A DNA stretch of 64,000 bases from Oikopleura dioica (lineage: Eukaryota; Animalia; Chordata), in NCBI GenBank assembly GCA_907165135.1, contig OU015568.1, positions 15,263,208 through 15,327,207 on the forward strand. Reading direction: 5' to 3'. The position numbers and the translations under genes are program-made. Below the pieces are notes generated by a model. The model was given only the letters and a program-made list of their open reading frames with translations, did not search any database and was not told the origin of the DNA. This document shows, in pieces, positions 16,798 to 50,351 of this stretch. Numbering within the stretch: position 1 is the stretch's first letter; each line of letters begins with the position of its first letter.

Positions 16798-16798
16798 T

Positions 16799-30645: not shown

Positions 30646-30837
30646 ATGGGGAATATTATTCGCATCATTCATACAATCATTGAAGCCCTCACGATAGTCG
30701 TTAGACCAATAAGAAGTGGAAACGAGGAGCACGAAAAAATCGCTGAAGCAACAATAAAAGATGAAACTGACACGAAGGCAAAACCAAAGTCTGACAAAAA
30801 GCCATCAACCCAAGCCAAGCCCTATAAAAAGGGATAA
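30646..30837 (+). CDS. Small cargo ORF (63 aa) starting MGN, amphipathic N-terminus; overlaps capsid paralog
   Basis: Acceptor ttctttcag 14 nt upstream; Gly2. Confidence 0.45.
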   Translation: MGNIIRIIHTIIEALTIVVRPIRSGNEEHEKIAEATIKDETDTKAKPKSDKKPSTQAKPYKKG

Positions 30838-31519
30838 CGAACCAGACTTGGGGGAAATCAGCAACGGAAGGAGAAAACACTGGCAAAAAGAGGACAAATT
30901 CACAAAAATAATAAATAAAGAAAAGGAAAATAGACGAAACGACATCCAAAGAATAATTGATAAACACCTCGGCGAAAATCAGTTCAGAGCATGGAAATCG
31001 GACGAAAAAATATCATTCTGCGAGCACTTGTGCCGAAACGCAAACGCAATTTGCTTTGCCCGAAACTGTGGCCTCTCAGACAAACAATTGGTTACTTTAT
31101 TTATGCTGACCCTACGCAAAGAGGATATGTACATCGAACAACTGCTTGAAGCGGAGGATTTGCACGACTTCGGTCGTTGCCTGAAAAAGATAGGAAAGTA
31201 TCTGGGGGAAAGGGATGTCATGACAGATGAAATCTTCAACGTAAGAAGAAAGCCAGAAGAGTCGCTCCTGACATTCTTTAAACGCCTCACCCTGGTATAC
31301 GAAGCCTCTTCTAGGCATAGCTTGAAGTCCGATCAAACAGCAGCGTTTCTTTACCCATTAGTAAAAAACAATGCTACAAGAACTCAAAAGATTGAGCTTA
31401 GCAGAGTGCTAGAGGTCAACGGAAAGTACAAAAATGCGATTACCTACGCACGCTTGGAATCCGCGATAAAAGTAGCCCAAATAATGGACGACTCAGTCTT
31501 CAATCCGGACCAAGCTTAA
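30761..31519 (+). CDS. Stand-alone capsid (Gag CA) paralog 1, 252 aa
   Basis: Colinear with Gag CA: GLSDKQLVTLFMLTLR vs GLTDSQMVSLFMLTLR; RRKPEESLLTFFKRL vs KRRPQESLLAFFIRL; PLVKNNAT vs PVIKNNAT; AQIMDDS in both. Confidence 0.9.
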   Translation: MKLTRRQNQSLTKSHQPKPSPIKRDNEPDLGEISNGRRKHWQKEDKFTKIINKEKENRRNDIQRIIDKHLGENQFRAWKSDEKISFCEHLCRNANAICFARNCGLSDKQLVTLFMLTLRKEDMYIEQLLEAEDLHDFGRCLKKIGKYLGERDVMTDEIFNVRRKPEESLLTFFKRLTLVYEASSRHSLKSDQTAAFLYPLVKNNATRTQKIELSRVLEVNGKYKNAITYARLESAIKVAQIMDDSVFNPDQA

Positions 31520-31742
31520 TCACCAGCCACCAAAGAAAGGAGATAGTTAAATAGGAATTAAACGCTGAAAAGAGACGCCACATGAGGATTAACCTGCTCA
31601 GGCTTAAAATAACAGATATCGAACTATTACAAGAAACCAAAAGAAGCTATTTTACTGAAAATATCATAACAAAAAAATGAAGGAAAGAACCTTCAAAACC
31701 CATTGGGCTCACACCAAAGAAATAATAATAACATCATTCAGG

Positions 31743-31985
31743 ATGATTCGTTATAGTGAAAGATATCAGGACAATACGTACGAGTATGTCCACGTCACGG
31801 TCCCAAAGTCTTGGGTCCCGAAAATACCGATTGAGCGCCTTATGACAGTACAAGAGTGGCGGGAACTTGGAATAAACCTCCTAACAAATTGGGAACACTA
31901 TTTGAGACATCTTCCCGAACCACACATCCTCTTGTTTCGCCGCAAACGACAAAAGGAGGAGTCTTTTTCAACCCCGACCAAGTAA
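31743..31985 (+). CDS. Cks1/Suc1 CDK regulatory subunit homolog (80 aa)
   Basis: YSERYQDNTYEYVHVTVPK...LMTVQEWRELG...WEHY...HLPEPHILLFRR matches the Cks signature. Confidence 0.92.
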   Translation: MIRYSERYQDNTYEYVHVTVPKSWVPKIPIERLMTVQEWRELGINLLTNWEHYLRHLPEPHILLFRRKRQKEESFSTPTK

Positions 31986-32127
31986 ATAAAGCAACGCGGA
32001 GCGAAGCTAAACCATATTTAAGCATCGATGAAGAAAGAACACAAAACTAAAATTCGAAAATCGCCAATTATTTGCTGCAAAAGCTCTCCGACCAAGAAAT
32101 AGTGTTCAATAAATAGTAAGTTTAGAC

Positions 32128-32601
32128 ATGAATGAAGCAACTACTGTTAGTGGCCTCATTATCGGGTTAATAATCGCAATATTGACCTGCGCCCTAATCT
32201 CCTTGATCCTTGTCGTCGTAACAGCCCGGTTCCTTGAAACCAAATACTACTCGCCAGCCCAGAAGGAAGTCGCCAACAGAATAGCGGCCCAACTAGACGA
32301 ATGCCGAACGTTGGTCCGCCGAATCGACGACAGACTGACAAGACAAGCACAACAACAATCAGCCAGACGAGCGCTACGCAATCAACAAAACAAGTTGGCC
32401 GACCAAGTGAACCTGACACTCCCGCGACGTAAACGATGTCGAAGTGAGGATTTGGATGCAGTGTTCCCGAAGCTGAATCTTGGAGGCGATAACGAAACGG
32501 ACAAAGAAAGCCCGGCTATGCCACCGCCAATGCGCCTTCTTGATCGACGCGAATCAAAAATTATGAAAAGATCCTGCTCCCTTGACAATAATCTCTGCTA
32601 A
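32128..32601 (+). CDS. Single-pass membrane protein with cytosolic coiled coil (157 aa)
   Basis: N-terminal TM GLIIGLIIAILTCALISLILVVV; acceptor tttag 2 nt before ATG. Confidence 0.7.
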   Translation: MNEATTVSGLIIGLIIAILTCALISLILVVVTARFLETKYYSPAQKEVANRIAAQLDECRTLVRRIDDRLTRQAQQQSARRALRNQQNKLADQVNLTLPRRKRCRSEDLDAVFPKLNLGGDNETDKESPAMPPPMRLLDRRESKIMKRSCSLDNNLC

Positions 32602-32672
32602 AAGAATCAGTTAATTGTGAATAGCGAATATCGTAGAACTATAATAACCCTACCAGAAAACCCCACTTCAGC

Positions 32673-33232
32673 ATGACTTTTAATGAAAGCATCGGCCGAA
32701 TTCCAACAAAAGATACGCAAAGCGAATACCTCAGGACTATTCCATCTATCCTGCGAGGAGACGAAGTTGCCAACGTGTTCCAAGCAAGAAAAACAAAGTC
32801 AGCCATTGGCGTTTTGAAAATCATACTTGCCGAATTAATGCGGTCGGAAAAAGCAGTAATGACGCCCGCAGAAGCCTTAGATCATCTAAGAAGCTACCTT
32901 AATACCCACCCAAAAGCAGAATCAGCATCAAGCATCCTCGATTTCCATTGGAGAATTACATTCACCCTGGCAAGCACAAAAGGAAAGAAAAAACTCACGA
33001 AAAGGCCTTGGGCCTAGTCGCAAACTTCATCGACAATCATCTTCTCTCCAAAAGCTTCTTTGAAGAGCTGAAATATGCAAATTTTCACCTCCAAAGCTGT
33101 AGGGAAATATCAAAGAAAAGATGCATTGTCGCCAGGGAGGAGCTGCAAGCAATTCGCGCAGGAGCCGCTGCAAAGAATAGACGTACAATAAAAAATGGCC
33201 TAAGAAGACGAGTCATCATCACAAAAAAGTAA
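32673..33232 (+). CDS. Element cargo, hypothetical (two overlapping ORFs, probably one gene with a 1-nt frameshift near 32942)
   Basis: ORFs 32673-33017 and 32948-33232 overlap; one extra T in gatttc joins them. Confidence 0.5.
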
Positions 33233-33336
33233 AGAAACATGCTCCCTTTTCCAATGACTAAAACCTTCTAGTGCAAGCCAGCCGAGGATAATCAACAACG
33301 AAGAAAGCAAAAAGACAATTTAAAATTAAGGATTAC

Positions 33337-34116
33337 ATGGACTGTACAAAACATCTCAAAAAAATGTCACCCGAAATAGAACAAAGAAATTATAAAGTCC
33401 AAGTAGCAATAATAAGCAATTTCAGTATGAACTCAATCGAAAGAAAACACTTCTTCGTGTGGAACGTCTTACCAGTGTGCTTCGGTGACCAAATCGCTCC
33501 AAATAGGCTGCCATTTCCGGAATTGTGTGAACTCAGTGGCTTCAAGGCCCTCTTGGACCAACTCATCAACGATCTGTCCGACTTGCAGATCATTACCGAC
33601 GGACTCATAAACGAACTCAAGACGAGACCGGAACGAATCAGACCATTGCTAAAGCGATACGCGCAGGACGCAAATAGAACCCCCACGTGCGTCGCATGGA
33701 CTTTCTTCTATGCAACTCTCGGAACCTATCTCTGTCTTCGAGAAGAATCACACGACCCCCGGATCTATCAGAGATGGAGAAACTGCCTTCTCGAAATCGC
33801 AAACACAAGGCTTGACGACAGCGCCTTCAACTTCGAACTCGCCCCAACCCTATACCTTCTTAGCCGCTCACGAGCTACAGCAATCGGGTCAATCATTGAT
33901 GCTTCCAGACAAGCCGACCAGGAAAGGGAACAAGACAGCGGAAACGAAGGCACTGAAAGTGGATCGGACATCGCCGAAGAGGATTTTCTGCCAGCCAACA
34001 GTGAAATCAATGGGAATGAAGAGCAAGAGCAAGTACTCGAACAACCAAACTCAATGGAGTCCTCACCAGCAAACAAAGCAGCGCCTGAACGTCCCGAAGA
34101 GGAGACATCTCTATAA
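33337..34116 (+). CDS. Element cargo, hypothetical 259 aa with acidic tail containing DSGNEGTES
   Basis: Long ORF with acceptor-like aattaag upstream. Confidence 0.7.
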   Translation: MDCTKHLKKMSPEIEQRNYKVQVAIISNFSMNSIERKHFFVWNVLPVCFGDQIAPNRLPFPELCELSGFKALLDQLINDLSDLQIITDGLINELKTRPERIRPLLKRYAQDANRTPTCVAWTFFYATLGTYLCLREESHDPRIYQRWRNCLLEIANTRLDDSAFNFELAPTLYLLSRSRATAIGSIIDASRQADQEREQDSGNEGTESGSDIAEEDFLPANSEINGNEEQEQVLEQPNSMESSPANKAAPERPEEETSL

Positions 34117-34336
34117 GAAGGTAAACACCAGGCACTAGGAAACGACTAACACTAATTCAAGGGCAAAATTCAATCATACATGAAGAAAGAAGCAGTGAAA
34201 AGAGAAAGTCATAAGTACTATTTTCTGACCAAACATAAATCCAATTTTCGACGTGAACTGTAACTAAAAACTAGAAAAATCGTTAACTTAGCATTGAATT
34301 CAACAAGGAAAATTTAGACTGAAAATCAATAAAACC

Positions 34337-34912
34337 ATGTCTCAAAAGGAAAGTCGGCTCGCAAGCGTAGAAGACCTCCTTAACGGAACAGTAAGAAGCC
34401 CAATCCAGTTGTCGCTTTTCAAGGAAACACTGGCCCGGGCAATACTCAAAAAGCCGCAACAGCGATGCAATGACGTGAACGAAGAATGGCTCAGCCCCTT
34501 CTGTGAAGCAGTGAACACTGTAATACGAGCCTCCGAATATTGGCTTGCGGCGCAAACAACGGCAACAAGAATGCGAATTGCAGGAATGCACCATCATCAG
34601 TTAGCCCGCAGAAACTTAGGGTCAACCGAAGACTTAGTATACTTCATTGCCTTTCGAAACATCCAACGATGGCTACAGATTGCGGACCAAGGGTAGGAGC
34701 AAAGAACGGATAATATTCAACCCATAAGAATTTTAAGCTATGACTACTGGTTGATTCTCGAAATCTGGGGATTCTCTTTCAACGAACCCGAAGTGGCGCG
34801 ATGCTTCTACCTGGATGTTCAGGGCTGGACACCGACTCTTCCATCAATCATTCAATATGGCTACCAATGCGCGGCAAAAACGTCACCAATGGGAGACTTC
34901 CGGTTTTTCTAG
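34337..34912 (+). CDS. Element cargo family X, copy 1 (2 exons; intron 34693-34737; 176 aa)
   Basis: Splicing the 45-bp GT-AG intron gives GYDYWLILEIWGFSFNEPEVARCFYLDV, which aligns with intronless paralog 45547 (GFDRAIIKEIGSINVQEPAVAKEFARDV). Confidence 0.8.
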
Positions 34913-35206
34913 GCAATGCTCAAAAGAAGAAATGCGGAACAGCATCAAGCAACGTACTAATTACGTTAACTTAAACAACAGCTGTATGCCACTTATTAAC
35001 AAAATTGATAGTAGTAGAATTGATCTGTGTTATACTTACCCTTCGTACTTATCGATCATCAATTCGAACCAAACTCTGTATCCTACTGTCCGCCATTGTT
35101 ATAACAGTATTTTTTTAAATCCGTAAAAGACTTAATTATGGTCATCGAAGGAAAATTTCAAGAAAGTGAGTAACTATTTTGGTTCAGACAAACGCATAAA
35201 ACAACC

Positions 35207-37057
35207 ATGACAAAACTTATCAAATCAACCAAACAACAAGCTGACTTGTGCAAAGGAGGAACTATCCTCCTGGTCACCAGCACCGATCTCAGCGGGGCAC
35301 TCGCTGCGGCGGTAAAAACCGCAAAGATCGAAGGCAGCTTCCTACTGGCAACATACGAGGAGTCAATCTTTGCCCAGAAATTCGCTAACAGCGCATTACA
35401 ATGGGCAAAGATGAAACAAGCTGCAGAGGAGATATTGGGAGAAAGCCCAAACACTCTGATCTATTTGGACGACTCCCTGGCCCAGCGGCACGGAACCCAA
35501 ATCCCAAGTTCTTCAAAAACTGAACCTGTGCAACAAGTAAAAAGAGAGCCGGGAAAAGGCGAGAGTATCACAGAAGGAGGTCTGGAGGCGAAACCAGACG
35601 TACCGAACGAGCAAGAGACTGAACAAGTCAAAGAGCTCAGGCGACAGATTGAGCGGCTTCGCTTAGAAAATAGCTTGAAGACCGAGAATCTATCAAAAGC
35701 GCTAAGTAAGGTGGGGGCCATAGAAGAGGAACGGAAGGCAAACTGCGAAATGCTTAACCGATACGACGAGATACACAAAGAAATGATCGCAAAAATGGAT
35801 AACGCATCGGAAATCCTCGACAAGGCCAACCATCTTTTTGGTAATCGTAAGCGAGATCACGACAGTAACACCTCAGAAACAGACTCCGAGGAAGAAGATT
35901 GGGACGAACAAAGAGAGAAAGAAGCAGAGGAGCGAAATGCAAGGAAAAGAACGAGCGAACAACGTCAAAAGAAGAGAGGCCGAGAAGAGAATCCCAGTCC
36001 CTCTCGGAGGGAAAGCTCAACAGAGACAACAAGAAAAGAAAAACTGAGCGAGAAAAAGAAGCCAAAGAAGGATGGAGTGGTCCGATTCGTTGGAAACCCA
36101 CAGAAATTCCAATTGAAAAATTGGAAGACGGAAGAGAATATCACCTATTGGGAGCACCTTACAAGGAATAAAATTGCTCTCAACAACGCAAAGCAGAGCG
36201 GGTTAACAGACAGTCAGATGGTGTCACTCTTTATGTTAACCCTCCGCCCCGAAGACGCCTTCATTGAAGAATTGCTGGAAGAATCCTGGAAGAATAATTT
36301 TGAGCTATTTCTGGAAAAAATTGGGAAATTTCTGGCAGGAAGTCAGAGTAGCATGATGAACGATGTATTGACCGCCAAGCGACGGCCTCAGGAATCTCTT
36401 CTTGCATTCTTTATACGGCTTTGCACCATGTTTAAAACATCCTCGGGAAAAGACCCTAAGTCCCAAGAGGCAGCAATGGTGCTTCACCCAGTCATCAAAA
36501 ACAACGCCACTAAAATCCAAAAAACGGAACTAATCCGAGAACTGGAAGCCGGGAAGGCGGCTGACACACCAATAACGTTTGATAAGCTTCAAGCGGCGAT
36601 CAAACAAGCACAAATCATGGATGATTCAAACTTCCATGACGCTCCCGCAGAGCTTGTCTACAACATGGAAGGGGACAAAAGAACGAACACCCAAGAAAAC
36701 CAAGCATGGTCCAACAAGGGGAAAGGGATATCCGAAGCACCCAAGGTTAGCTGGAAGGAGAAAACAAGTGATGAATGGAACAGGGGACCCGCCACCCGGC
36801 CGAACGCAAATCGACCCCCATGGAACCGACAAGAGCGCTTCAGTCGGGGACGAGAACCTTATCCCCGAAGAACTGGACCACGTGAACCCTTATGTTTCAA
36901 CTGCAATGGGCGAGGCCATATGTGGCGCCAATGCAGCAAACCACTCAAAGACCGATTCGTGCGGGCACAAGCACAAGACAAAGCACGAGAGACGCGGGCG
37001 CGAGAGACAAAGACTCCGCCCGGGACAACAACTGCTAAGCCAAAAACCTCGGGCTAA
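35207..37057 (+). CDS. gag: Gag (616 aa): N-terminal extension, coiled coil, capsid, CCHC nucleocapsid
   Basis: Zinc knuckle CFNCNGRGHMWRQC; lies immediately upstream of pol. Confidence 0.92.
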   Translation: MTKLIKSTKQQADLCKGGTILLVTSTDLSGALAAAVKTAKIEGSFLLATYEESIFAQKFANSALQWAKMKQAAEEILGESPNTLIYLDDSLAQRHGTQIPSSSKTEPVQQVKREPGKGESITEGGLEAKPDVPNEQETEQVKELRRQIERLRLENSLKTENLSKALSKVGAIEEERKANCEMLNRYDEIHKEMIAKMDNASEILDKANHLFGNRKRDHDSNTSETDSEEEDWDEQREKEAEERNARKRTSEQRQKKRGREENPSPSRRESSTETTRKEKLSEKKKPKKDGVVRFVGNPQKFQLKNWKTEENITYWEHLTRNKIALNNAKQSGLTDSQMVSLFMLTLRPEDAFIEELLEESWKNNFELFLEKIGKFLAGSQSSMMNDVLTAKRRPQESLLAFFIRLCTMFKTSSGKDPKSQEAAMVLHPVIKNNATKIQKTELIRELEAGKAADTPITFDKLQAAIKQAQIMDDSNFHDAPAELVYNMEGDKRTNTQENQAWSNKGKGISEAPKVSWKEKTSDEWNRGPATRPNANRPPWNRQERFSRGREPYPRRTGPREPLCFNCNGRGHMWRQCSKPLKDRFVRAQAQDKARETRARETKTPPGTTTAKPKTSG

Positions 37058-37067
37058 GGCCCAGGTT

Positions 37068-40000
37068 ATGAACGTCAGACGAGGACGGCCGGATCACTGT
37101 ACAACTCTCCTCGTACGAACTGACGTAAAATTACGATCCGAGCGACGGTATCCAGTAGTGGTCAAAAACATTCTCACTCTCTTGGATACCGGCGCGAGCC
37201 TCAGCTGTGCCAGCCTTGATTTCGCGAAAAATCTGGAGGCACAGGGGTTCCCACTCAATAAGGAGAAGCCTATCCGTAGCAACCCGATGGCAGCGAAAGG
37301 GGCGCGAATGGAAATAGCATTCGACCTTGTATTGGATATAATCTTGCGAGGAGATCCTGATATCAGATTCCCTGGAACTCGCATAAGCATCATCCCGGGT
37401 CTAAGAGCTGAGCTCATTCTCGGAGTGGACAGTTTGCTTAACAAGACCATCCAATTGCAGAGAAGGACCGTTAAAATAAATGGGCAGACTTTCCCGCTTG
37501 CCTGCCCGGAAAACACCGTCCTACTGCGCGTTATCGAAGCCGGAAAGGGACAGGGAATGAATTTCCTGCGGGTTGATACAGGCCCACGAAAAGTGCACAA
37601 GGCATCAAAGCGACTTCTCCTTACATTGGATCCTGAATTTTCGCCCGGAGTCCCAGGAGTGGCTATGATTATCAACTCAAGCGAGTTGGAAACTGAGTTG
37701 ATGATCACGTACCCGGGTCCTGCGACTCCCGTCCCTAAGATATTCCTGGCCAGAATTGACGAGGTACAGGATGACCCTAATGAAGACTCACCGAAGAAAC
37801 TCACTCTCCAAGACATCGAGAAAATGACATCGAAAACAGAGCTTAGCGAAGATGGAATCGAGCGATTGAAGGAAATTCTAAAACAACATTCTGAAGCATT
37901 CTCGAAAGAAAAGACAGACGTTGGACTATATCAAGGACCGGAAGTCAAGCTCCAGCTTCTCGACCCCAGGCTCCCTGGAGCATGGGTTCGGCCAAGAAGA
38001 ATACCTTTCAGCCAAGTGGAATGGTTGAAAGCTGAGCTAAAGAAGATGGAAGAGGCGGGGATCATCGAAAGATCTACCGGAAGTAGCTTCAACGCGCCAC
38101 TCCAACTGGTAAAGAAGGCGAGCGGGGGCTATCGCATCTGCGTTGACATGAGAGCTCTTAACAACAGGCTCGCTGAAAGCAAATGGCCCCTTCCGTCCCT
38201 TGCCGAGACGTTGGAAAGCTTGTCGGGGTCTGCCTTCTTCTCCTGCGTGGATATAAGACAAGCCTTTTTCCATATGGCGCTGGAAGAAGAAAGCAAGCCG
38301 CTTACTGCGTTCTCAGCTCTCAATTCGCAATACCAGTTCAGACGGTTACCCATGGGTCTCAAGATCTCGCCGAGCGTCTACCAAATGGCAATGAAAGCCA
38401 CTCTGGGAGACGATCTGGGTAACCGTGTGGTCGCCTATCTTGACGACGTCCTCGTGTGTGGGAAAAACGAAGAAGAGCACCTCCAGACACTCGACCTCGT
38501 CCTTGCGAGACTTAAGAAAGCGGGGTTCCTGTTGAATCCAGACAAGTGCATCCTTGGAGCAAAGAAGATAACGTTTTTGGGGCACGAAGTAACACCAAGC
38601 GGCTATTTTCCAAAGACAGACAATCTTGCGGCCATACGAGAGTTTCCAGTACCGACCAACAAGAAGGCGCTTCGAAGGTTTATCGGGATGTGTTCGTTTT
38701 ACAGCACACTCGTTCCTAATCTTCAACGAAAACTAGCCCCGCTTCATGAAATCAGCGGGCCAAAAGCAACCTTCAATTGGACAAGCTCGCAAGAAGACGC
38801 GTTTCACCTCATCAAAAGGCTTATGGTGGCTCAAACTGGGCTAGCCTTTCCATCGAATGACCCAAAAGCTGTCTTGTTAGTCACATCAGACGCCAGTGAA
38901 ACGGGTTTCGGCGGAATGATAAGTCAGAAAATAGGAGATGAGGAAGAACAGCCCTTGGGCTACACTAGCGGATTCTTTCGAGGTCCTCAAGTGCGGTGGG
39001 CCATAAACGAAAAGGAACTTTATGCTTTCATTAAAACTCTTGAAACATTCCATCACTTCGTTTATGGGAGATCATTCCGATGGCGGACGGACAGTAAATG
39101 CCTGTCTTTCATTTGCGCGGAAACAAATGGCAAGCAAACCAGAAGACCATCTGCCAAGAAACTCCGCTGGCTGGAAAAATTAACAGAATACGATTTTAGC
39201 ATCACTCACTGCGAAGGGACAAGCCTCGAAATGAGTGTCGCTGACTGTCTTTCCCGGATTGATCCCCCAAACTTGGTAATGCACATCGACTCGGAAATTC
39301 AGAAGAAGTATAGGATGCTGAACCGACCAATCCCGACCTGGATAAAACTTAAAGGAATCACGAAGTCTGAGCTTCGCTTGGCCCAGGACAACGATGGAGA
39401 CTTGGTCAATTTTCGTAATGGATGGAAACCGCTGAAAGCCAAATATAGACTCAAGGAGCGAAGCGATGGAATACTTGTTTATGATCACAAGGATAAACCC
39501 CGGATTCCAATCCCGCAAGAACTCCAAGACAGGATTATATTAAGCTTTCACCTCCCACACCACGGAAGAACAACCAACCTGGTCCACGCGATGAGGGACG
39601 CGGATATCATCTTCCCAAAAATGGCAAAGAAGATAAAAACCAAGGTACAAACGTGCCCAGCGTGCCTCGCAACCGGAACGACCGAGAACCCAAAGCATCG
39701 ACAAGTGACGGCGCCAAAAGAGATGCATCCGAACATGACCGTAACCATCGACCTTTTGGGTCCTTTACCGACAAGTCCAACTAGAAAGAAGTATATCCTC
39801 GCGGCCGTAGACAATCTCACTCGTTGGATTGAGTTGAGGTGCATAGTCGACAAGACAGCCGAGCACGTTGCAAAAGCCCTTCTCGATATATTTTTTCTAA
39901 GAGGCCCCCCAAGGGCCGTATCTTGTGATTTCGGTCGAGAATTTAACAACGTGCTCTTAACAGAACTATTAACATCGTTCGGCACAGCAGTCAACCATGG

Positions 40001-41546: not shown

Positions 41547-41649
41547 TGAACTCACTTTAGGAAGATCCCTTCTTGAGCAAACAAGGCTTAATGATCCAGA
41601 AATTGGATTTCTTCGTGCAAGCAGAAAAACAGTCACAGAAACCGACCGG

Positions 41650-42321: not shown

Positions 42322-42362
42322 CAGACAAATCGTGAAAGATGATAAACAAATAGTTTAGACCA

Positions 42363-42509: not shown

Positions 42510-42588
42510 AACCTCATCCAAACCAACCCCCAGGGGGAGGGGGGAAATCAACTACCCATCGACGCTCACGGAAACCTACTTCAGAAAA

Positions 42589-42735: not shown

Positions 42736-42821
42736 CCCGTCTGGAAACTAGCCTAGCTAGTCACAGAAAAAAAAAATATTATATCGCACTCAGCCCATAG
42801 CCAATCGATTCCTTAAGACCT

Positions 42822-43187: not shown

Positions 43188-43247
43188 GGTAGATCCGAAC
43201 CCAAGAAATAACCAGTTGTGCTTAAGACAAGCCACTATTTCAACAAA

Positions 43248-43757
43248 ATGTCGGCAAGATCTACACAAACAGTAAGCAACAATGCTTGCGACGAATTCGA
43301 AGAGATGATCGTTTGGACCATCATGGACAATGACACAAGCCATTTTGACGAAAAGGAACTCGTTGAGAAAATCGGATGGACTGGATTCCGGGAAGCCATA
43401 AAAGAAGCAACCGAGGACGCAAAAACTTACCAACAATGGTTAAAAACCACCGTTGCAACGTGGACCCGAGTTCCTCAGGAAATAAAAAGCACACTTAAGG
43501 ACTTTGCTCATGATAATTCTAGGCAAGGACTTTTCGACTGGACTTACGAGCTTATACTCTATGGATCCGCACTGCACTCCACGACTACTGACAGAGGGGT
43601 GTTAAACGAATGGCAAAACGCAGTATACGGAGATTTTGTTGAAAAATTCGGAAATCCTCCTTACATAGCATTTACCGAGCGCCAACGACTTCCGGAAAAA
43701 GAAGAGATAAATATTGCACGTAAAACGTGCTTGCTGCGCTTAACCTCAGAAATATGA
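43248..43757 (+). CDS. Element cargo, hypothetical 169 aa
   Basis: ATG after acceptor tgcttaag; Trp-rich globular-looking ORF. Confidence 0.65.
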   Translation: MSARSTQTVSNNACDEFEEMIVWTIMDNDTSHFDEKELVEKIGWTGFREAIKEATEDAKTYQQWLKTTVATWTRVPQEIKSTLKDFAHDNSRQGLFDWTYELILYGSALHSTTTDRGVLNEWQNAVYGDFVEKFGNPPYIAFTERQRLPEKEEINIARKTCLLRLTSEI

Positions 43758-43831
43758 ATCATAAAAACCCCAAGTAGAGTTAACCTCAAGTCTTTATTTG
43801 AGTAGATTGATAGCACTAACTTCCGTTTAGA

Positions 43832-44047
43832 ATGGCCCCAAATACTTGCAAACCAACGAATTGTCCCTCAACCGAATGTTCCGAAGCCGTAGAAAAACTT
43901 GATTTACCGGGGACCGTCTATCTAGCGGACACGATAAGCAAAATCCTATTTTCAATCATATACATTTTGCTTGGAATCGTCGGCTGGATGTGCGTGCATG
44001 CTCTCTTCAAGTACTTTAAAAATAGTCAAGAAAAAAAGACAGAATGA
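43832..44047 (+). CDS. Small single-pass membrane protein (71 aa), Cys/Pro N-terminus
   Basis: CKPTNCPSTEC, TM ILFSIIYILLGIVGWMCVHALF; upstream cactaac branch point + ttccgtttag. Confidence 0.7.
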   Translation: MAPNTCKPTNCPSTECSEAVEKLDLPGTVYLADTISKILFSIIYILLGIVGWMCVHALFKYFKNSQEKKTE

Positions 44048-44136
44048 GTTTATTAAATCCTGTTTACCCTTATGGAACTGCTCGGACAACGAAAAAAACC
44101 AATGAATGTGTAAGAAAATAAACGAACTTCCTTTAG

Positions 44137-44919
44137 ATGGAAGAAGGAAACACCACTCAGCAAGCAAGTCGGGAAAACGAAAAGCAAAACCGGCACTATC
44201 CGCGGCTACACATTGAGTATCCATGTGGCAACAGGAAGATATGTCCCGCAACGAGTGACGATCCGATGGAAAATCTGAGGAATGCGATTTTTGAAGCATG
44301 CCCCGCTAAGCCCGGAGAAGAGTTGCGAAATAAAATCAAGATTTTTCACAAAGGGTCCGAAGTCAAACGAAAGGAAGAATTAAAAGGTCTGAAACCTGGA
44401 GAAACAATCCACGCCACTTGGCCTGGGGAACTCGGCCCAAATACTACTCCCGCGCAACAAACTAGGCAGATCCCAAAAATCATCGATGCCGCCTCCATCC
44501 AAAGACAAAATTTCGAATCATCCCTTAGAAACACGTTGAGAAACCAGCCACCTCAAAAACGAAAACTCGAGGAAGAAAGCGAGGTTCAAGCAGAGCAAGC
44601 AACACATCGACAGATCGGCTGTCTGCTAACAAAACTTGGAAGCGATCTTATCCAGTGGTCAAGCCCCTTACATGACCTAAGTAACCTGTTACAAGCAGAT
44701 GAAATCTTACGACACGACCCCGAAAAAGCAGACAAAACAAACAAAGCCATTCTTAACAATTACACGAACATGACGTACCTGAGTCAGCTCCTAGTAAACC
44801 TTCAACGAATCCTGTCCCCGACGACACTCAAGTCACCAGAGACCTTATCCGAAGCACCGTATCTGAACACAATGCACCCAGCCTTTGAACTGTCTCCTAG
44901 CTTCAACAATTTCCTTTAA
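44137..44919 (+). CDS. Ubiquitin-like-domain protein, BAG6/Scythe-like (260 aa)
   Basis: UBL pattern LHIEY..G.RK...DDPMENLRNAI...IKIFHKG...L..GETIH, followed by a helical block (IGCLLTKLG...PLHDLSNLLQ) resembling the BAG6 conserved region. Confidence 0.5.
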   Translation: MEEGNTTQQASRENEKQNRHYPRLHIEYPCGNRKICPATSDDPMENLRNAIFEACPAKPGEELRNKIKIFHKGSEVKRKEELKGLKPGETIHATWPGELGPNTTPAQQTRQIPKIIDAASIQRQNFESSLRNTLRNQPPQKRKLEEESEVQAEQATHRQIGCLLTKLGSDLIQWSSPLHDLSNLLQADEILRHDPEKADKTNKAILNNYTNMTYLSQLLVNLQRILSPTTLKSPETLSEAPYLNTMHPAFELSPSFNNFL

Positions 44920-44953
44920 TAAAAGACGTGAATAGGTAACAGGCTCCCTTCAG

Positions 44954-45487
44954 ATGCGGTACAGATGCGCTTATTGCAACACTCAATGGGCGTCCATAAA
45001 TTTCGAAGACGGCTGTAGAAATTGCAATAGCGATTTCATCGAAATAATCAATGATCGAGCCAGCACACGAGATTCAAATACAAACTGGACCACCCTGGGA
45101 CAAATCAAGTGGACTCTGACGATAGAGAAAAGGCACTGGGAGAAGCTTAAGTCCTTAAACACCGACCTGGTAAAGAGCAAACAGAAAAAATAGAGCGGCT
45201 TAATGAATCACGTATTTAAGATGATGCGATTCCGCATTCCGACGCCCTCCTCGCCCAAAGAGAAGCTAAGAACCGAAAAGGAAGGCGGTAAGGACTTTCC
45301 CGTGGACAAGCAACGCCAAAAGGAAGTGGACATCTGCGCAATATGCCAGGAAGGACTCTTCAACAACCTTGCTTGCCTACGTTGTAATCATGTTTTTCAT
45401 CAAGGTTGTATTCGCAAGTGGTTAAACCAACCACGCTGCTCGCGCTGTCCGTACTGCAACCAAACAGTCCCACTGCGTTTCTTCTAA
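44954..45487 (+). CDS. RNF126/RNF115-like E3 ligase A: Zn ribbon + RING-H2 (intron 45170-45220; 160 aa)
   Basis: YRCAYC...CRNCNSDFIEII (cf. CPRCESGFIEEL); CAIC...CNHVFHQGC..W...CPYC. A 51-bp GT-AG intron joins them in frame. Confidence 0.75.
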
Positions 45488-45546
45488 CCACGAATTATAA
45501 GAAGCTAAAGAGCAAATTGAGTAATTGTTCCTTCTTTTAAGAACAA

Positions 45547-46104
45547 ATGGAACAGGCAAAAATTGACAATATTATCATTGGAACAGCGGAAGACGCGATC
45601 AAGCTTTCCTCCTTCCAAGAAATTATCGTACGAGAAATCCTGGGGAAACCGAAGTTGATTGGTTTCAATGCTGAAGAAGAATGGCAGCGTCCCCTGAGAG
45701 ACGCCGTTCATTTGGTAAACCAGAAAGCCGAACTATGGCTAAGATCCCAAACTTGGCAGGAACAAGCAACAATAGCGAAACTGCCGAGACAACGACTAGC
45801 GACAACAACTTTGTCTTCCACCAAGGACCTCGCACTGCTGATCGCATTCCGAACTATGCAAAGAAAGTTGAAAAGCCCTTGGCAAAAAGAAGGTTTTGAT
45901 CGCGCGATCATCAAAGAAATTGGGAGCATCAATGTTCAAGAACCAGCGGTCGCCAAGGAATTCGCTCGCGACGTAAACACGGGAATAGAATCGATTCCGG
46001 CAATCATCGAAGAGGCGTACACAAAAATAAAAAATGAAGAATCACTGGAAGATACCCGAAAAAAACCTGTTAAACCTGCATGTCTGACACTTTCCCAGCG
46101 ATAA
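45547..46104 (+). CDS. Element cargo family X, copy 2 (185 aa, intronless)
   Basis: IKLSSFQEIIVREILGKP / EEWQRPLRDAV / STKDLALLIAFRTMQR align with copy 1 (34337). Confidence 0.8.
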   Translation: MEQAKIDNIIIGTAEDAIKLSSFQEIIVREILGKPKLIGFNAEEEWQRPLRDAVHLVNQKAELWLRSQTWQEQATIAKLPRQRLATTTLSSTKDLALLIAFRTMQRKLKSPWQKEGFDRAIIKEIGSINVQEPAVAKEFARDVNTGIESIPAIIEEAYTKIKNEESLEDTRKKPVKPACLTLSQR

Positions 46105-46202
46105 GAGAAAAGCTGGATAATACTTCCCCGAACTCATTTCCTTCCGTCTTAAACAAGTCAACGTCTTTTAGAAAGCATTTGCTGACAAAAAGTAATTTAA
46201 GA

Positions 46203-46694
46203 ATGAAGCAAACCGGAGGAAATTACATCCTCTCCCTTGTCATGAATCAACCAACTGCAATGCCCAAAGAGGAGCTCGCCGCGAAGGGACTTGACCGTGG
46301 TAGAGCATTCGGGGAAGGATGCGGAGGAACTCAAGACAAATTCCTCGGTAGCAAAATTGGGATCGACGCTATGATAGAGGCAGTGAAGCAAACCCTCGAA
46401 GAATTGTCCGAGGGTCGAGACCTGCCTGCAGAACAAGGAGGACTTCTAATGGGAACCGCGATAGGCTTTATGAAAAGCCACGGTCACTCACCTCTTCACG
46501 AGGAAGGCTATCGAAAAATAGTGCAAGTCGTGTTTCCTCGATTGGCAAACGTACAAACACCGGCTTACTGGAGCCCTAAAACAATATTCGCACACCTGTA
46601 CTTCAATCTCATGATGAGACGACAGAAACTACCCAGACAGGGCGTAGGCGCGGAGCCACCGAAGGTAAGCTTGCAAGATGTGTCCCGAAATTAA
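46203..46694 (+). CDS. Element cargo, hypothetical 163 aa
   Basis: ATG after acceptor aatttaag. Confidence 0.6.
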   Translation: MKQTGGNYILSLVMNQPTAMPKEELAAKGLDRGRAFGEGCGGTQDKFLGSKIGIDAMIEAVKQTLEELSEGRDLPAEQGGLLMGTAIGFMKSHGHSPLHEEGYRKIVQVVFPRLANVQTPAYWSPKTIFAHLYFNLMMRRQKLPRQGVGAEPPKVSLQDVSRN

Positions 46695-46715
46695 ACAATC
46701 TAGAAAATCGCCCGA

Positions 46716-46901
46716 ATGGATCCGTCTGTAGCAATTCCGGGACCAACAACTCAGACAACACAAATTTTCCCCGGGCAACACACCACTCAAATCCAGCCGA
46801 CAACAAGGGAACAACCAATCCAGATGCCAACGGAGAATCTCATCGGAGACGGAAACGTAGACAAATTCTTCGAAACAGTCTTCCCACCTGCCTTTCAATA
46901 A
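46716..46901 (+). CDS. Small Pro/Thr/Gln-rich ORF (61 aa)
   Basis: Sense ORF filling the gap between cargo genes. Confidence 0.4.
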   Translation: MDPSVAIPGPTTQTTQIFPGQHTTQIQPTTREQPIQMPTENLIGDGNVDKFFETVFPPAFQ

Positions 46902-47038
46902 CCCTGAACCATATGTATTTCCGGGCTAACCATCCCCCTCCTACAACCATACCCAACAACCACATCTGAAAACACCAATCGATTATAAGGAATTATCACT
47001 GAAAACCGGAATTAATAAGATTTCTTTCAAGATTGAAA

Positions 47039-47700
47039 ATGAGCTCCCCAAGAGATTCGAACCTAGCTCCAAAAACCGAGCCGGAAATAAAGGTAAATAA
47101 ACAAAATGATAAGAGCTAATCTTCCCTAAGGAGGAATCCGTTCATCTCGAGCTACTCAAATCCTACAAGCACCTCCTTCCGAACCAAATCTACAATTATG
47201 CCAAACTTGTCGTTAAACGAGTAATGACAACTGACCCAAAGCTTTCCCCAAAAGGCATCGTGACCAGCGCAGTTTATTTGGCGTACAAATTTTCGCCAGA
47301 GCCAAAAACAACAACAGCCATCGGAGAAATGCTGAAATGCCCAAATTGGATGATTTACAAAACCGCACCGTTAGTACGGACACGATTCAACAAGGAGACC
47401 AAAAACGAGCTAGAGATTGCAAGAAAATACATCGATCAACAAGCTCATCTCGCTGATTCGGATTGGATCACTCGGGCAAGACAAATAGCCGACCATGCCT
47501 GGCACCCCAACATCAAAGCGAGCCCGAAAAGAATTGCTGCATCATCCGCGTACTTAGCATACAAATTTTCGCCAACACCAATGTCGGCGAGGAAAGTAGC
47601 ACAGCAATGGAACTTCTCCACAGCGCAAATTCTGGCAACAGCCCAAACCATTCAGAAGCATCTCAAAATAGTCTGTTTTATTACCGCCCGGCGGGAGTAG
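47039..47700 (+). CDS. TFIIB-core-like (two cyclin-fold repeats, no Zn ribbon); intron 47093-47130; 207 aa
   Basis: Repeats GIVTSAVYLAYKF and RIAASSAYLAYKF. A 38-bp intron (GTAAAT...gctaat...ccctaag) supplies an in-frame ATG exon. Confidence 0.7.
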
Positions 47701-47749
47701 ACTGCTTGAACAATCAGAGTTACCGATCTTAACCTGAACCCGATTTCAG

Positions 47750-48524
47750 ATGGCTAGCTTTCGCTGCTTAGGTTGTAACCTGAATTGCGAGGAGATTCGA
47801 AAACCCTGGAATTGCCCGAATTGCAACAGTAAGTTCATCGATCTAATAGGAAAATGGAAAAAAGAAGACGTGGTAGACAAGACCGGTTACAACAATGGAG
47901 AGATTCTCTTCAAAATCGTTGCAAACCACGAGAGGGCAATCAGCCAAATCAAACACTTGATGGAACTTAGTAACTGTCGAACCTCTGCACATGTAAGTGC
48001 CCTAGATGGTTGGGAAAAAGTAAAAAATTAATCAGGGTGAAACAAATGAAAACGCCCAAACACCGGGGCCTACTCCATCAACGGAACCACCGAAAGACCC
48101 AACAGGCAGAAAGACGTCCGGGCTTTTAGAAGAAAAGAACAGTTTCAAAAAGGCACCGACTTCTGTTAACCTTGAAGGACGGAATCAATTGAAAATGAGA
48201 CCACAGCCAAGGGTAGGAGAAATAGAAGGTATTCGGGGACAGTGCCAAGGAAGATACCTCATACCAAATGGGAAGCGTAGACATAAACAAAAAACAATTG
48301 AAGAAATTGGGACTCGCGAATATGAAAGACGCGAGGACACACTTCGACATTCCACCATGCATGAGACTCTTGAATACCCTTGCGGCATCTGCATGGAAGA
48401 ATTCGCGGCCAAGTGCTGTTCATTCCTCCCCTCGTGCGGGCACACTTTCCACACTCACTGCATCCTAAAATGGCTTCTCCACAAAAATACCTGTCCAATT
48501 TGCCAGGAAATCATAGCAAAATAA
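47750..48524 (+). CDS. RNF126/RNF115-like E3 ligase B: Zn ribbon + RING-H2 (intron 47993-48035; 243 aa)
   Basis: FRCLGC...CPNCNSKFIDLI; CGIC...CGHTFHTHC..W...CPIC. A 43-bp GTAAGT...CAG intron joins them in frame. Confidence 0.8.
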
Positions 48525-48576
48525 AATAATAATAAGAAAAAGATAACTCTGACACTCTTAACTTACCCTGTTAAGT

Positions 48577-49421
48577 ATGGACGAGAACCAAGAGGAAGCA
48601 GCACAAACTGAAAACGAAGAATCACCGCATAATTCAAGGCAGAAGGAACAAACACTGCCATGTTTCTTGGAAGAAATAATGACACCACCGAAGAAAATAG
48701 GGCGCCTAGAAGTAATCAACCCAGATGGAACAAGAACTTTGCAACAATTCGTTGAAGGAGGAGCCACGTGCGAGGAACTGCAAGCACTCTTAGACTCACT
48801 TTCACGCATTGAATTGACAGAATGGGAAAAAGAGGTAGGCGACCCCTGCCGCATTTGCCTGGAAGAATTTGACAAAACAGCAAACCTTATACCCACCTGT
48901 GGACACTTCTTTCACCAACATTGTCTACGAAACTGGCTCATATGGAAGGATTCTTGCCCACTATGCATCTTACCGGTAAACGAGAACAGATTGAACATGA
49001 CCCGAAAATACTTTAGGTTAAGCCGAAAGGAACCATCCCAATAACAATTAAGGATTGGCTGGAAAAGAAACATAAAGTTAAGTACGAATCGTTGCTCGAT
49101 GCGGTAAATATACTTGAAAAGAAGGAAGAATATGACAACATCAACTCACATTTCCGCCTCGAACCGGACGGATCGCTCATTGAAATAAAAATCATCTTCA
49201 GGAAAGTCGAAGGCGAAGAATTGGAGGAAAGGCTCATGCTGACAAAGAAAATCAAGATAAGCGCAGTAGAAAAGTACGAAAGTGATTGCGGGCTCTGCCA
49301 GGAAGACCTGCCTGAAGACATATCGGTCATGACATGCTGTTACGCCTACTACCATAATGCGTGCCTGCGAAAATGGCTAGCAAACAGACCTTACTGCAAG
49401 TACTGCAACACCCCCCTATAA
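48577..49421 (+). CDS. Tandem double-RING protein (intron 48976-49016; 267 aa)
   Basis: RING-H2 CRIC...CGHFFHQHC..W...CPLC and a second RING CGLC...CCYAYYHNAC..W...CKYC. A 41-bp GT-AG intron joins the ORFs in frame. Confidence 0.75.
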
Positions 49422-49481
49422 GATTGAAGTTGCAACAGATTCAGAAACCACCTAAATTAAAATATACCAAAGGATAGCACT

Positions 49482-50351
49482 ATGATGTTTAGAATGCTCT
49501 CCACAAACACATTTCAGCTCTACGTATGGCTTCCTACCGAAAACATTTTTTTCGAGAACCATGTCTCGAGGAACCAACAAGGATTCCGGGACGCACGGAA
49601 AGCAGGGCTCTCCGACGAACAATTGACAAGTCTCTTTCTCATAACACTGACACCAGAACAAAGGAGTTACGAGACTCTCCTCGACGAAATTGAGAAAACA
49701 AATTTTGATCTATGCGTAGATCGGATGAGGAAGATTCTTACCACGAACCTGGTATACGATCGAGACTTGCCATACCTCGACGCCAAGGAAAAATTCCGGC
49801 TCTATGTATGGGGACCAAACGAAAAAATCAGCTTCGCACAACATGTGGCAAGAAACAGACAAGGGTTCAACAGCGCAAGAAAATGTGGGCTTCTAGATGT
49901 TGATCTCACTCGTCTTTTGTTTATGACTCTCAGACCAGAGTTTGCACACCTCGAGAAAGGCCTAAATAGGAATGAAAAAACCAAACTCGAGCTTTGCATC
50001 GAGAGAATGAAGAAATGTATTTCAGCGAAACATCAAAACCATAATAAGGGGAATGAAGTAAACGGAAAACGCAAAGAAGGCGAAGCCCTGATCATTTTCT
50101 TCGGACGACTCTGCGCAGATCTGCAAAAGTCACCTGGCGAAGAACCACTATCAGACGCCGCGGCCCTCAGAATAATTTACCCTATTCTCCTACAGAACTG
50201 TGGCCCTGCCGAGTTCCATACCCTTGTCAAATATAAGAGCAGCGACGGAACCCAAGATTTAACCTTCAGAGCGCTTGCAGCTAAACTAGGGAACCTGCAC
50301 GTACCCTACGGTGGCATACAAACAAGACCAAGACGCGCTATTAATCGCTAG
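49482..50351 (+). CDS. Capsid paralog 2 with tandem-duplicated CA N-terminal module (289 aa)
   Basis: FQLYVW..ENI.F..HV.RN.QGF..ARK.GL.D..LT.L...TL.PE occurs twice and matches Gag FQLKNWKTEENITYWEHLTRN...GLTDSQMVSLFMLTLRPE; then RKEGEALIIFFGRL. Confidence 0.85.
   Translation: MMFRMLSTNTFQLYVWLPTENIFFENHVSRNQQGFRDARKAGLSDEQLTSLFLITLTPEQRSYETLLDEIEKTNFDLCVDRMRKILTTNLVYDRDLPYLDAKEKFRLYVWGPNEKISFAQHVARNRQGFNSARKCGLLDVDLTRLLFMTLRPEFAHLEKGLNRNEKTKLELCIERMKKCISAKHQNHNKGNEVNGKRKEGEALIIFFGRLCADLQKSPGEEPLSDAAALRIIYPILLQNCGPAEFHTLVKYKSSDGTQDLTFRALAAKLGNLHVPYGGIQTRPRRAINR

Follow-up and report, generated by a model that had tools for sequence, protein, structure and literature searches.

The window analyzed herein, a stretch of 64,000 nucleotides of Oikopleura dioica (GCA_907165135.1, contig OU015568.1, positions 15,263,208 to 15,327,207 of the forward strand), contains an LTR retroelement with three genes that encode capsid (CA) modules. 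Retroviruses and LTR retrotransposons are generally assumed to assemble their shells from one capsid protein and not to grow beyond roughly 10 kb, with an internal region of 25 kb in the largest known cases. The locus raises the question of whether the two capsid genes outside gag, designated A and B, are real and maintained genes of one element, and if so, what role they play beside Gag.

Boundaries and composition of the element

A single element of ~37 kb containing all three capsid genes was originally predicted. We located this element, which measures 37,362 bp between the outer ends of two identical LTRs; the LTRs and a CCGT duplication enclose the three genes.

16491..53852, + strand: whole LTR retroelement, Ty3/gypsy type, 37,362 bp, Oikopleura dioica
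16487..16490: left copy of the target-site duplication CCGT, in the flank sequence
16491..16797, + strand: 5' LTR, 307 bp, exact 307-nt repeat
One base after the 5' LTR end: TGG-initiated primer-binding-like stretch
Upstream of the 3' LTR: purine-rich tract
53546..53852, + strand: 3' LTR, 307 bp, 100% identical to the 5' LTR
53853-53856: right copy of CCGT, in the flank sequence

The ends of the element, with TG..CA termini, direct LTRs of 307 bp, and a 4-bp duplication, are those of a Ty3/gypsy LTR element. The internal region of 36.7 kb between these short LTRs includes a 5' part of 13 kb (16798-29949), with a GC content of 37% and 8% of its length in + strand ORFs, and a dense coding block of 23.6 kb, with a GC content of 45%, 84% in + strand ORFs, and about 30 ORFs on the same strand. 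About 25 further ORFs are located on the same strand; a connexin-like gene was recognized by Pfam, no env was recognizable in the element, and Rfam and tRNA scans of the window gave no matches. The element is very young and apparently intact, with intact gag and pol, and is flanked by host genes.

The different composition of the 5' 13 kb and the tendency of identical repeats to mislead assemblers may suggest that this is not one element, i.e., that the LTRs belong to different insertions or reflect an assembly artefact and that the capsid genes were brought together from several neighbors. We consider this highly improbable because the two copies of the 4-bp duplication match across the whole unit, the 5' LTR is accompanied by a primer-binding-like stretch and the 3' LTR by a purine tract, and a host RING ORF is interrupted by the unit, with its ATG and two more codons in the left flank and its in-frame continuation in the right flank. 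Furthermore, there is only one pol and no further LTR copy in the element, and two assemblies contain annotated proteins of the element, on contigs of 17.09 and 14.53 Mb.

Gag, Pol, and the number of capsid lobes

35207..37057, + strand: gag, 616 aa, acidic coiled N-terminal part, CA lobes, CCHC knuckle
36098-36343, + strand: Gag CA N-lobe (six-frame profile scan)
36350-36631, + strand: Gag CA C-lobe (six-frame profile scan)
36893-36934, + strand: Gag CCHC knuckle (regular-expression match)
36579..40607, + strand: pol, 1342-aa ORF with a protease motif, RT, RNase H, and integrase

The open frame of pol, which is in the +1 frame, shares about 480 nt with the end of gag. Its domains were identified by Pfam as RVT_1 (1.5e-29), RT_RNaseH_2 (2.4e-20), and rve (2.1e-11), and the order of RT, RNase H, and integrase, 3' of a knuckle-bearing Gag, is that of Ty3/gypsy elements. 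The Gag protein and O. dioica OKI2018_I69 chr1.g979 have the same sequence (100% identity).

A profile scan of the window in six frames revealed exactly four capsid N-lobes and three C-lobes, with no further capsid lobe above noise. This is the predicted arrangement of three capsid genes with four CA N-terminal modules; all lay where they had been expected and were homologous to each other. The knuckle of Gag, for which the Pfam zf-CCHC score (aa 563-578) was under the curated cut-off, is the only CCHC knuckle found in the window by the regular expression in all six frames. A and B consequently lack a knuckle, in agreement with their earlier description as proteins without nucleocapsid.

Paralog A and the overlapping mini-ORF

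30761..31519, + strand: capsid paralog A, 252 aa, basic arm, N-lobe, and C-lobe, no zinc knuckle
30971-31204, + strand: A N-lobe (six-frame profile scan)
31220-31495, + strand: A C-lobe (six-frame profile scan)
30646..30837, + strand: mini-ORF, 63 aa, Met-Gly start, hydrophobic N-terminus, basic tail

Paralog A is a separate ORF 3.7 kb upstream of gag. The full CA assigned to it was borne out by the presence of both lobe types and by a BLASTP match to Gag aa 302-477 (47% identity over 176 aa, E 8e-52). The N-terminal 73 aa are basic (pI 10.2), and the stop codon is located 5 residues past the C-lobe.

Regarding the mini-ORF, the original prediction of an amphipathic reading frame with Gly2 that overlaps A was correct as to its presence: it covers the start of A over 77 nt, with A in the +1 frame relative to it, and its aa 2-21 are hydrophobic and amphipathic. 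The myristoyl anchor implied by Gly at residue 2 is doubtful because residue 6 is Arg; substrates of N-myristoyltransferase normally have a small, uncharged residue at this position, and the sequence did not conform to the myristoylation preference. The mini-ORF had no Pfam match, and since alternative-frame overlapping ORFs of at least 60 aa are common in the A-rich sequence here, its length is no more than expected by chance. The mini-ORF is preceded, at a distance of 14-23 nt, by a pyrimidine-rich AG acceptor-like motif. The start of A is the second AUG, behind that of the mini-ORF, which is in a good context, and the translation of A would thus be limited. The gag/pol and mini-ORF/A overlaps have two in-frame heptamers in common; both regions are A-rich, and no inference was drawn.

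Paralog B

49482..50351, + strand: capsid paralog B, 289 aa, N-N-C, short basic tail, no zinc knuckle
49506-49748, + strand: B N-lobe 1 (six-frame profile scan)
49788-50027, + strand: B N-lobe 2 (six-frame profile scan)
50043-50303, + strand: B C-lobe (six-frame profile scan)

Paralog B is a separate ORF 12.4 kb downstream of gag in which both lobe types are present. In BLASTP, B aa 98-274 matched Gag aa 294-470 (30% identity, E 2e-24), and B aa 11-86 matched Gag aa 301-376 (42% identity, E 8e-17). Since two segments of B align to the N-module of Gag, B carries this module in tandem, and the doubled N-terminal module followed by a C-terminal part, which had been read from the ORF previously, was recovered as N-N-C by BLASTP and the profile scan alike. 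A and B also matched each other in BLASTP. A relative of B, P0008, is a stand-alone protein of 191 aa with a single N-lobe and 43% identity; its alignment with B aa 100-286 runs end to end, and it has a basic tail and a start of its own.

Nature of the shared domain

Comparisons of their sequences indicate that A, B, and Gag are clearly homologous. Pfam searches with the three proteins gave no match to a gag or capsid family, including Retrotrans_gag (PF03732), at E up to 0.1, and a profile search of PDB sequences returned weak knuckle matches only. In AlphaFold models, the CA of Gag was predicted to form two helical lobes (pLDDT 79) and B three (pLDDT 74). The top Foldseek matches were the PNMA2 capsid (prob 0.99), HERV-K Gag, MLV CA-CTD (TM 0.64 on the target), Arc, dArc1, and Ty3, and those in BFVD included a metavirus ORF1 and ERV Gags. 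The best structural matches were almost all retroelement capsids, with every E-value >0.001 and a global TM of 0.2-0.4. Among 60 remote family members, zf-CCHC was present in 23, and Pfam Retrotran_gag_2 was matched by four (best E 3e-5). One Glu in the C-lobe was invariant in all 60 members and two Arg were retained in at least 90%; the same Glu and Arg positions, together with a Phe and a Leu, did not vary when Gag, A, B, and six relatives were compared. These acidic, aromatic, and basic residues are conserved where the C-lobe begins, and we take them to be of the major homology type (MHR). Based on a fold similarity of modest significance and the position in Gag, the shared domain is suggested to be capsid-like.

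The prominence of PNMA2 and Arc capsids among these matches raises the possibility that A and/or B are independent carriers, which may self-assemble into small shells or oligomers and transfer subgenomic RNA or protein cargo between cells, or handle viral RNA in the nucleus. Arc, dArc, and PNMA2 have two helical lobes and can form shells without a zinc knuckle; the basic 73-aa arm of A and the basic tail of B could bind nucleic acid independently of a knuckle, and the connexin-like gene of the element hints at cell-cell transfer. However, the fold matches simply reflect the common CA fold, and we regard a carrier role as rather unlikely. Arc, dArc, and PNMA2 differ from A and B in being host-domesticated single genes with no doubled N-lobe and no full gag alongside in an active element.

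Age, constraint, and relatives

Identity at third codon positions among the paralogs was 29-38%, indicative of saturation, versus 53-68% at positions 1 and 2. Position-wise identities were used because NG86 dN/dS between the paralogs was undefined with saturated synonymous sites. Of the positions without variation among Gag proteins, A retains 75% (N-lobe) and 68% (C-lobe) versus 34-36% of other positions, and B retains 57% (N-lobe) and 41% (C-lobe) versus 18-30%. Gag-invariant positions are thus kept about twice as often as others, and 25-60% of them have been lost. The saturated third positions and retained Gag-invariant positions indicate that A and B are old and under constraint at the protein level.

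In the phylogeny, B and P0008 grouped together (bootstrap 100) outside all Gags, and A branched outside the clade of the Gag of the window and its nearest relatives. The stand-alone architecture of B is, as judged from P0008, conserved in a second lineage. A profile search of 1.84 billion representatives yielded one B-type relative and no A-type relative, and, thus, the trait is rare and its conservation rests on few sequences. Word-index protein searches returned only its own fragment for A and only P0008 for B. A showed 54-56% identity to P0007 (O. dioica YSR.g17040), the Gag of a sister element, and 46-48% to its own Gag. P0007 was rejected as an A-type orthologue because it is 72-76% identical to Gag versus 54-56% to A, and its sequence also continues beyond the point at which A stops. 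No pol, LTR, or knuckle remnants were found beside A or B, and, therefore, their interpretation as remnants of nested elements was also rejected; their composition matches that of gag and of the coding block as a whole.

Considering that recombination is frequent in retroelements, that identical LTRs left no time for this copy to decay, and that very few relatives exist, A and B may be functionless relics of gag genes acquired by recombination, which are open only because the copy is young. We think this improbable: despite the saturation of synonymous sites, Gag-invariant positions were preferentially retained, the ORFs end exactly at domain borders with no adjoining remnants, and the borders of B are reproduced in P0008 at 43% identity.

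Taken together, these results make it very likely that A and B are real, long-maintained capsid-domain genes, present as separate cistrons in a very young, apparently intact 37.4-kb element of the Ty3/gypsy type (Tor-like), in which A consists of a basic arm and a complete two-lobed CA, and B of three lobes (N-N-C) and a short basic tail, neither with the coiled region or zinc knuckle of Gag.

Possible functions of the two paralogs

We tentatively favor the view that A and B function as accessory shell subunits acting through capsid-capsid contacts. Both proteins would be made already free of the Gag polyprotein and could bind the lattice of Gag-derived CA via the conserved N-lobe and the C-lobe with its residues of the major homology type. 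They may form specialized capsomers or lattice positions, and thereby adjust how a particle with an unusually long RNA inside curves and closes, or how large it becomes. With its doubled N-lobe, three chains of B would provide six N-lobes and only three C-lobes. The steps that we infer are the expression of A and B, their contact with Gag, and any effect on particles.

The packing density of Ty3 is 1 base per 5 nm3 (PMC6525542). At this density, two genomes of 37.4 kb would need about 3.7e5 nm3, a volume some 7.5 times that of the Ty3 interior and about 1.9 times that of an HIV-1 core. The original prediction was that ~37 kb of RNA probably needs a larger shell than that of normal gypsy particles; for two such genomes, in comparison with Ty3, this premise is reasonable. 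Ty3 and retroviruses form closed shells of pentamers and hexamers from one CA (PMC6525542), and additional capsid paralogs are thus not demanded by geometry. Quasi-equivalent co-assembly is also uncertain because A and B are only 47 and 30% identical to their own CA, respectively, and have lost Gag-invariant positions. A more far-reaching possibility, which we consider speculative and rather unlikely, is a multi-component shell of a Gag-derived major CA and two minor CA paralogs, with B as pseudo-hexameric trimers similar to the double-jelly-roll proteins of DNA viruses; this would be the first such retrovirus-like element, and may have allowed growth to ~37 kb with some 25 cellular-type genes.

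Nearly as likely as accessory shell subunits are assembly inhibitors, namely, nucleocapsid-less capsid decoys that would disrupt the lattice by binding to Gag or CA, either limiting the copy number of the element itself, as Ty1 p22 does, or excluding rival Tor-type elements from the same cell in a manner analogous to Fv1. Minor shell proteins and dominant-negative factors had both been proposed originally, and the sequence data are compatible with either. A and B lack the RNA-binding knuckle and the N-terminal region of Gag and retain the lobes for CA-CA contacts, and their long branches and many lost Gag-invariant positions, as well as the closer similarity of A to the Gag of the sister element than to its own, fit an antagonist. 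To our knowledge, the stand-alone Gag-derived proteins of known function are all inhibitors or host-domesticated genes, and those stand-alone Gag fragments to which a function has been assigned, namely, Ty1 p22, Fv1, and sheep enJS56A1, are inhibitors. On the other hand, a self-inhibitor is expected to be close to its own Gag, as is p22 by virtue of sharing its ORF, whereas the identities here are 47 and 30%. The maintenance of two genes through saturating synonymous divergence, with the architecture of B in a second lineage, would be a large cost for self-limitation, and in the profile search, none of the rival Gags was closer to the two paralogs than the relatives listed above.

Comparison with known systems

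Similar to A and B, the Ty1 p22/p18 copy-number-control factor is an element-encoded, capsid-containing protein without nucleocapsid function; p22/p18 acts on Gag. Ty1 is a copia-type element, and p22, the translation of which begins at an internal start of its gag ORF, comprises no more than the C-terminal part of CA and has the same sequence as its target. In contrast, A and B each have a gene of their own and complete CA lobes, with 47 and 30% identity to Gag, respectively, and neither starts inside the gag ORF nor consists of the C-terminal half of CA only. Fv1 and other Gag-derived restriction genes of hosts are also stand-alone gag-derived proteins, and Fv1-type proteins have been proposed to bind incoming or assembling capsids. 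Unlike these host genes and those of the Arc-PNMA type, which are located outside any mobile element, A and B are enclosed by the LTRs of an intact element.

Other close systems are the Tor elements, retrovirus-like Ty3/gypsy elements of the same host with the same LTR-gag-pol layout and additional genes 3' of pol, which are expressible apart from gag-pol (PMC4402516, PMC8008620). The Tor elements described carry gag, pol, and often one env (PMC4402516, PMC8008620), whereas the present element has a length of 37.4 kb, about 25 further ORFs, three capsid genes, and no recognizable env. Burro of planarians and Ogre of plants are also gypsy-like LTR elements far larger than 10 kb; Burro has an internal region of up to about 25 kb with one huge polyprotein, a single Gag, and RING- and ubiquitin-related domains, and the size of Ogre is mostly due to its LTRs (PMC6431247). 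The element described herein differs from both in its internal region of 36.7 kb between 307-bp LTRs, its many separate cistrons, and its three capsid genes. In the literature covered, which was incomplete, neither this element nor any other LTR element with more than one capsid gene was described.

If A and B are components of the shell, they would represent a route by which a reverse-transcribing element passes the size limit; if they are inhibitors, this would be the first element with dedicated, separately encoded anti-capsid genes. In either case, the duplication of capsid genes is linked with genome gigantism of an element in a chordate with an exceptionally compact genome.

Capsid genes in the element

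Three capsid genes containing four N-terminal modules of the capsid domain (CA) had been claimed for this element in the original prediction, and the count proved exact. A scan of the full window in six frames with local profile HMMs, one per CA lobe, identified exactly four N-lobes and three C-lobes and no further module above noise; these HMMs were built including the found sequences, and the informative part of the scan is the absence of extra modules.

35207-37057: gag, 616 aa, with a CCHC zinc knuckle; the sole gag with a knuckle between the LTRs
30761-31519: paralog A, 252 aa
49482-50351: paralog B, 289 aa, with two N-lobes followed by a C-lobe

In BLASTP alignments, A matched Gag aa 302-477 with 47% identity (E 8e-52), while B gave two separate matches, from residues 98-274 to Gag aa 294-470 (30%, E 2e-24) and from residues 11-86 to Gag aa 301-376 (42%, E 8e-17). 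The description of both stand-alone paralogs as devoid of nucleocapsid also held because the only CCHC knuckle in the six frames of the window is that of Gag. Paralog A reaches its stop codon five residues past the C-lobe, and B ends in a basic tail of 15 residues. Both are A-rich in composition, like gag and the remaining coding block.

Identity of the shared domain

The domain in Gag, A, and B was unrecognised by Pfam, and a sequence profile search for solved capsid structures found none. The AlphaFold model of Gag aa 290-480, based on a six-sequence alignment (pLDDT 79), consists of two helical lobes (model residues 9-87 and 93-182), and that of B (pLDDT 74) of three (24-90, 118-186, and 203-271). 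When the two models were compared with the PDB using Foldseek, nearly all matches were retroelement capsids, among them PNMA2 (E 0.018, prob 0.99), MLV CA-CTD (TM 0.64 on the target, rmsd 3.0 A), HERV-K Gag, Arc, dArc1, Ty3, and lentiviral and deltaretroviral CA; matches in BFVD were fungal metavirus ORF1 and ERV Gags. No match in either database reached E 0.001, and global TM scores were low, as is expected for two or three flexibly linked lobes.

Among 60 family members retrieved by profile search, zf-CCHC lies downstream of the domain in 23 and Pfam Retrotran_gag_2 is matched by four. One Glu at the start of the C-lobe is invariant in all 60 and two Arg are present in at least 90%; the same positions, together with one Phe and one Leu, show no variation among Gag, A, B, and six relatives, a pattern that we take to be the major homology region. 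On the basis of the capsid-type fold matches, the family features, the C-lobe pattern, and the location of the domain just upstream of the knuckle, we accepted the shared domain as CA and the module duplicated in B as the CA N-lobe.

Age, constraint, and relatives of the paralogs

Third codon positions are only 29-38% identical between the paralogs, which is near random and leaves the NG86 dS undefined, whereas positions 1 and 2 are 53-68% identical (dN 0.40-0.76). With invariant positions defined from five knuckle-bearing Gags, A retains 75% of them in the N-lobe and 68% in the C-lobe, against 34-36% matches to Gag at the remaining positions; the corresponding values for B are 57% and 41%, against 18-30% elsewhere. 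As judged from these substitution patterns, A and B are old genes under protein-level selection, neither fresh copies nor drifting relics; this constraint speaks against the view of the two genes as decaying relics, which we regard as very unlikely. Both have lost a good share of the positions conserved in Gag, which suggests that their function has diverged.

The CA family is narrow, as a profile search of 1.84 billion representatives returned only 79 proteins in total. The single relative of B is P0008, a protein of 191 aa encoded on a 961-nt Logan contig. This protein begins at a start codon of its own, contains a single N-lobe, lacks a knuckle, and ends in a basic tail resembling that of B. 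It can be aligned over its entire length with B aa 100-286 (43% identity) and shares 51% identity with the first N-lobe of B. Neighbour-joining paired B and P0008 with 100% bootstrap outside all Gags and placed A outside the clade of the window Gag, P0007 (the Gag of a Y-region sister element), and the metagenomic Gags P0003-P0005. The alignment and tree together indicate that the stand-alone, knuckle-less architecture of B is conserved in a second lineage; the doubling of the N-lobe is either specific to the present lineage or was lost in that of P0008. Protein searches, including that of the 1.84 billion representatives, found no A-type relative.

Boundaries of the element and host flanks

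The element measures 37,362 bp from LTR to LTR.

16491-16797 and 53546-53852: LTR copies, a direct repeat of 307 nt, 100% identical
36579-40607: pol, shifted by +1 frame from gag; Pfam identifies RT, RNase H, and integrase

Both LTR copies have TG..CA termini, and CCGT is found on either side of the element. A TGG-initiated stretch starts one base past the 5' LTR, and a purine-rich tract directly abuts the 3' LTR on its upstream side. Apart from the gag/pol frame offset, which is usual in such elements, gag and pol are free of stops and frameshifts. Gag matches a protein annotated on chr1 of Oikopleura dioica OKI2018_I69 with 100% identity, and a second NCBI assembly has annotations for other proteins of the element on a contig of 17.09 Mb. 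Neither a second pol nor a further LTR copy was found across the window, and we consider it highly improbable that the element is a composite or an artefact.

The flanks contain host genes of ordinary multi-exon structure, namely two RING genes, a cyclin, and genes for p53-like, glucosidase II beta, cytosolic carboxypeptidase, cyclophilin, and Sin1-like products. The left flank ends in the ATG and two further codons of a host RING ORF, the in-frame continuation of which lies directly past the 3' LTR, the pattern expected if the element inserted there once and recently. The element thus sits three codons into a RING-finger ORF (16484-16490 and 53853-54168), and a host gene was probably disrupted by this young insertion. 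Two inverted duplications in host DNA, one just upstream of the insertion site (15712-16465, arms of ~315 bp, 97-98%) and one near the window end (61510-63765, arms of ~1,060 bp, 99.2%), had no Rfam or tRNA match.

Mini-ORF ahead of paralog A

30646-30837: mini-ORF, 63 aa, Met-Gly start, basic tail

The amphipathic mini-ORF with Gly at position 2 that was proposed to overlap A exists, and its residues 2-21 form a hydrophobic stretch of high helical moment; myristoylation at this Gly is doubtful, since residue 6 is Arg, contrary to the usual N-myristoylation preference. Alternative-frame ORFs of this length are common in the region, and the mini-ORF alone is thus not significant. Its ATG, which lies in a good context for initiation, is the first past a pyrimidine-rich AG acceptor-like motif. 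The next ATG is that of A; it follows after 115 nt and is in the +1 frame, an offset equal to that from gag to pol. From this order and offset, A might be translated via leaky scanning, a frame change, or a separate transcript.

Other genes and regions

50704-51675 (+): intronless ORF of 323 aa that passes the curated cut-off of Pfam Connexin (E 2.6e-18), a retroelement-borne gene of the gap-junction type
31677-31985 (+): ORF of 102 aa, cyclin-dependent kinase regulatory subunit CKS, full profile (E 1.9e-26)
47224-47700, 51713-52333, and 52278-52622 (+): weak matches to the TFIIB repeat or the TFIIB zinc ribbon (E 0.002-0.014, none reaching its curated cut-off)
41361-41546, 45203-45487, 48189-48524, 48577-49044, and 49092-49421 (+): five small RING-finger ORFs
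34298-34909 and 45541-46101 (+): a second paralogous pair, 39% identity over 106 aa
32128-32601, 41014-41385, and 41650-42321 (+): small ORFs, each with a single predicted hydrophobic segment

The 206-aa product of 51713-52333 has an exact copy annotated in two assemblies. Three of the RING-finger ORFs are consecutive directly upstream of B, and the host RING genes beyond the 3' LTR (53860-54168 and 54298-54735) are weakly similar to those of the element. In the second pair, the copy lying just ahead of gag occupies two frames, with one switch between them that reflects either a frame change or an intron that went unrecognised; its downstream counterpart is a single ORF. No large envelope glycoprotein-like ORF was recognised anywhere in the element.

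The first 13 kb past the 5' LTR (16798-29949) are AT-rich (GC 37%), with a plus-strand ORF share of 8% versus 84% in the rest. This region contains short direct and tandem repeats (16891-17166, 25020-25226, and 28295-29078), a fragment of the Ras family (29666-29911, E 1.3e-5), and two related minus-strand ORFs (24117-24446 and 25672-26175).

Pyrimidine-rich AG acceptor-like motifs (30624-30632, 32660-32672, 44127-44136, 47744-47749, 51706-51711, and 52851-52857) sit at most 25 nt upstream of the ATG of several accessory ORFs. As operons in this organism undergo spliced-leader trans-splicing, these motifs suggest a possible expression route for the many cistrons.

Possible function and comparison with known elements

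At the level of their coding sequences, A and B are shown to be constrained CA proteins without the Gag N-terminal region and without a knuckle. The argument that a long RNA calls for a larger shell is quantitatively sound. The T=9 shell of Ty3, with 540 CA copies and an interior of ~5e4 nm3, packs two 5.2-kb RNAs at ~1 base per 5 nm3, and the HIV-1 core is ~2e5 nm3 (PMC6525542). By our own arithmetic, two 37.4-kb RNAs at the density of Ty3 would occupy ~3.7e5 nm3, equivalent to a sphere with an inner radius of ~45 nm and roughly 2,000 CA copies. A single CA is enough for pentamers and hexamers alike (PMC6525542).

We tentatively lean, if slightly, towards A and B as accessory shell subunits that would serve the element, since two separate genes have long been kept and one architecture is conserved elsewhere, which fits an element-serving function. 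A role as assembly inhibitors is nearly as probable; a protein that inhibits the Gag of its own element is, however, expected to remain closer to that Gag in sequence. Independent assemblies resembling those of Arc or PNMA appear unlikely.

Tor-type elements are classed in the literature as endogenous retroviruses of an animal. Those described contain gag and pol and, in many cases, one env (PMC4402516). Tor elements are the main LTR class in the genome paper on the Okinawa strain, which describes nothing resembling the present element (PMC8008620). The largest LTR-retroelement internal region in a review of giant transposons is ~25 kb (Burro) and encodes a single polyprotein that includes one Gag (PMC6431247), whereas several capsid genes are present here. 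Our literature search, the coverage of which was incomplete, found no report of several capsid genes within one LTR element. Capsid-derived accessory genes are already known, and we rate as new that those found here are borne by the element itself, separately encoded, and ancient.
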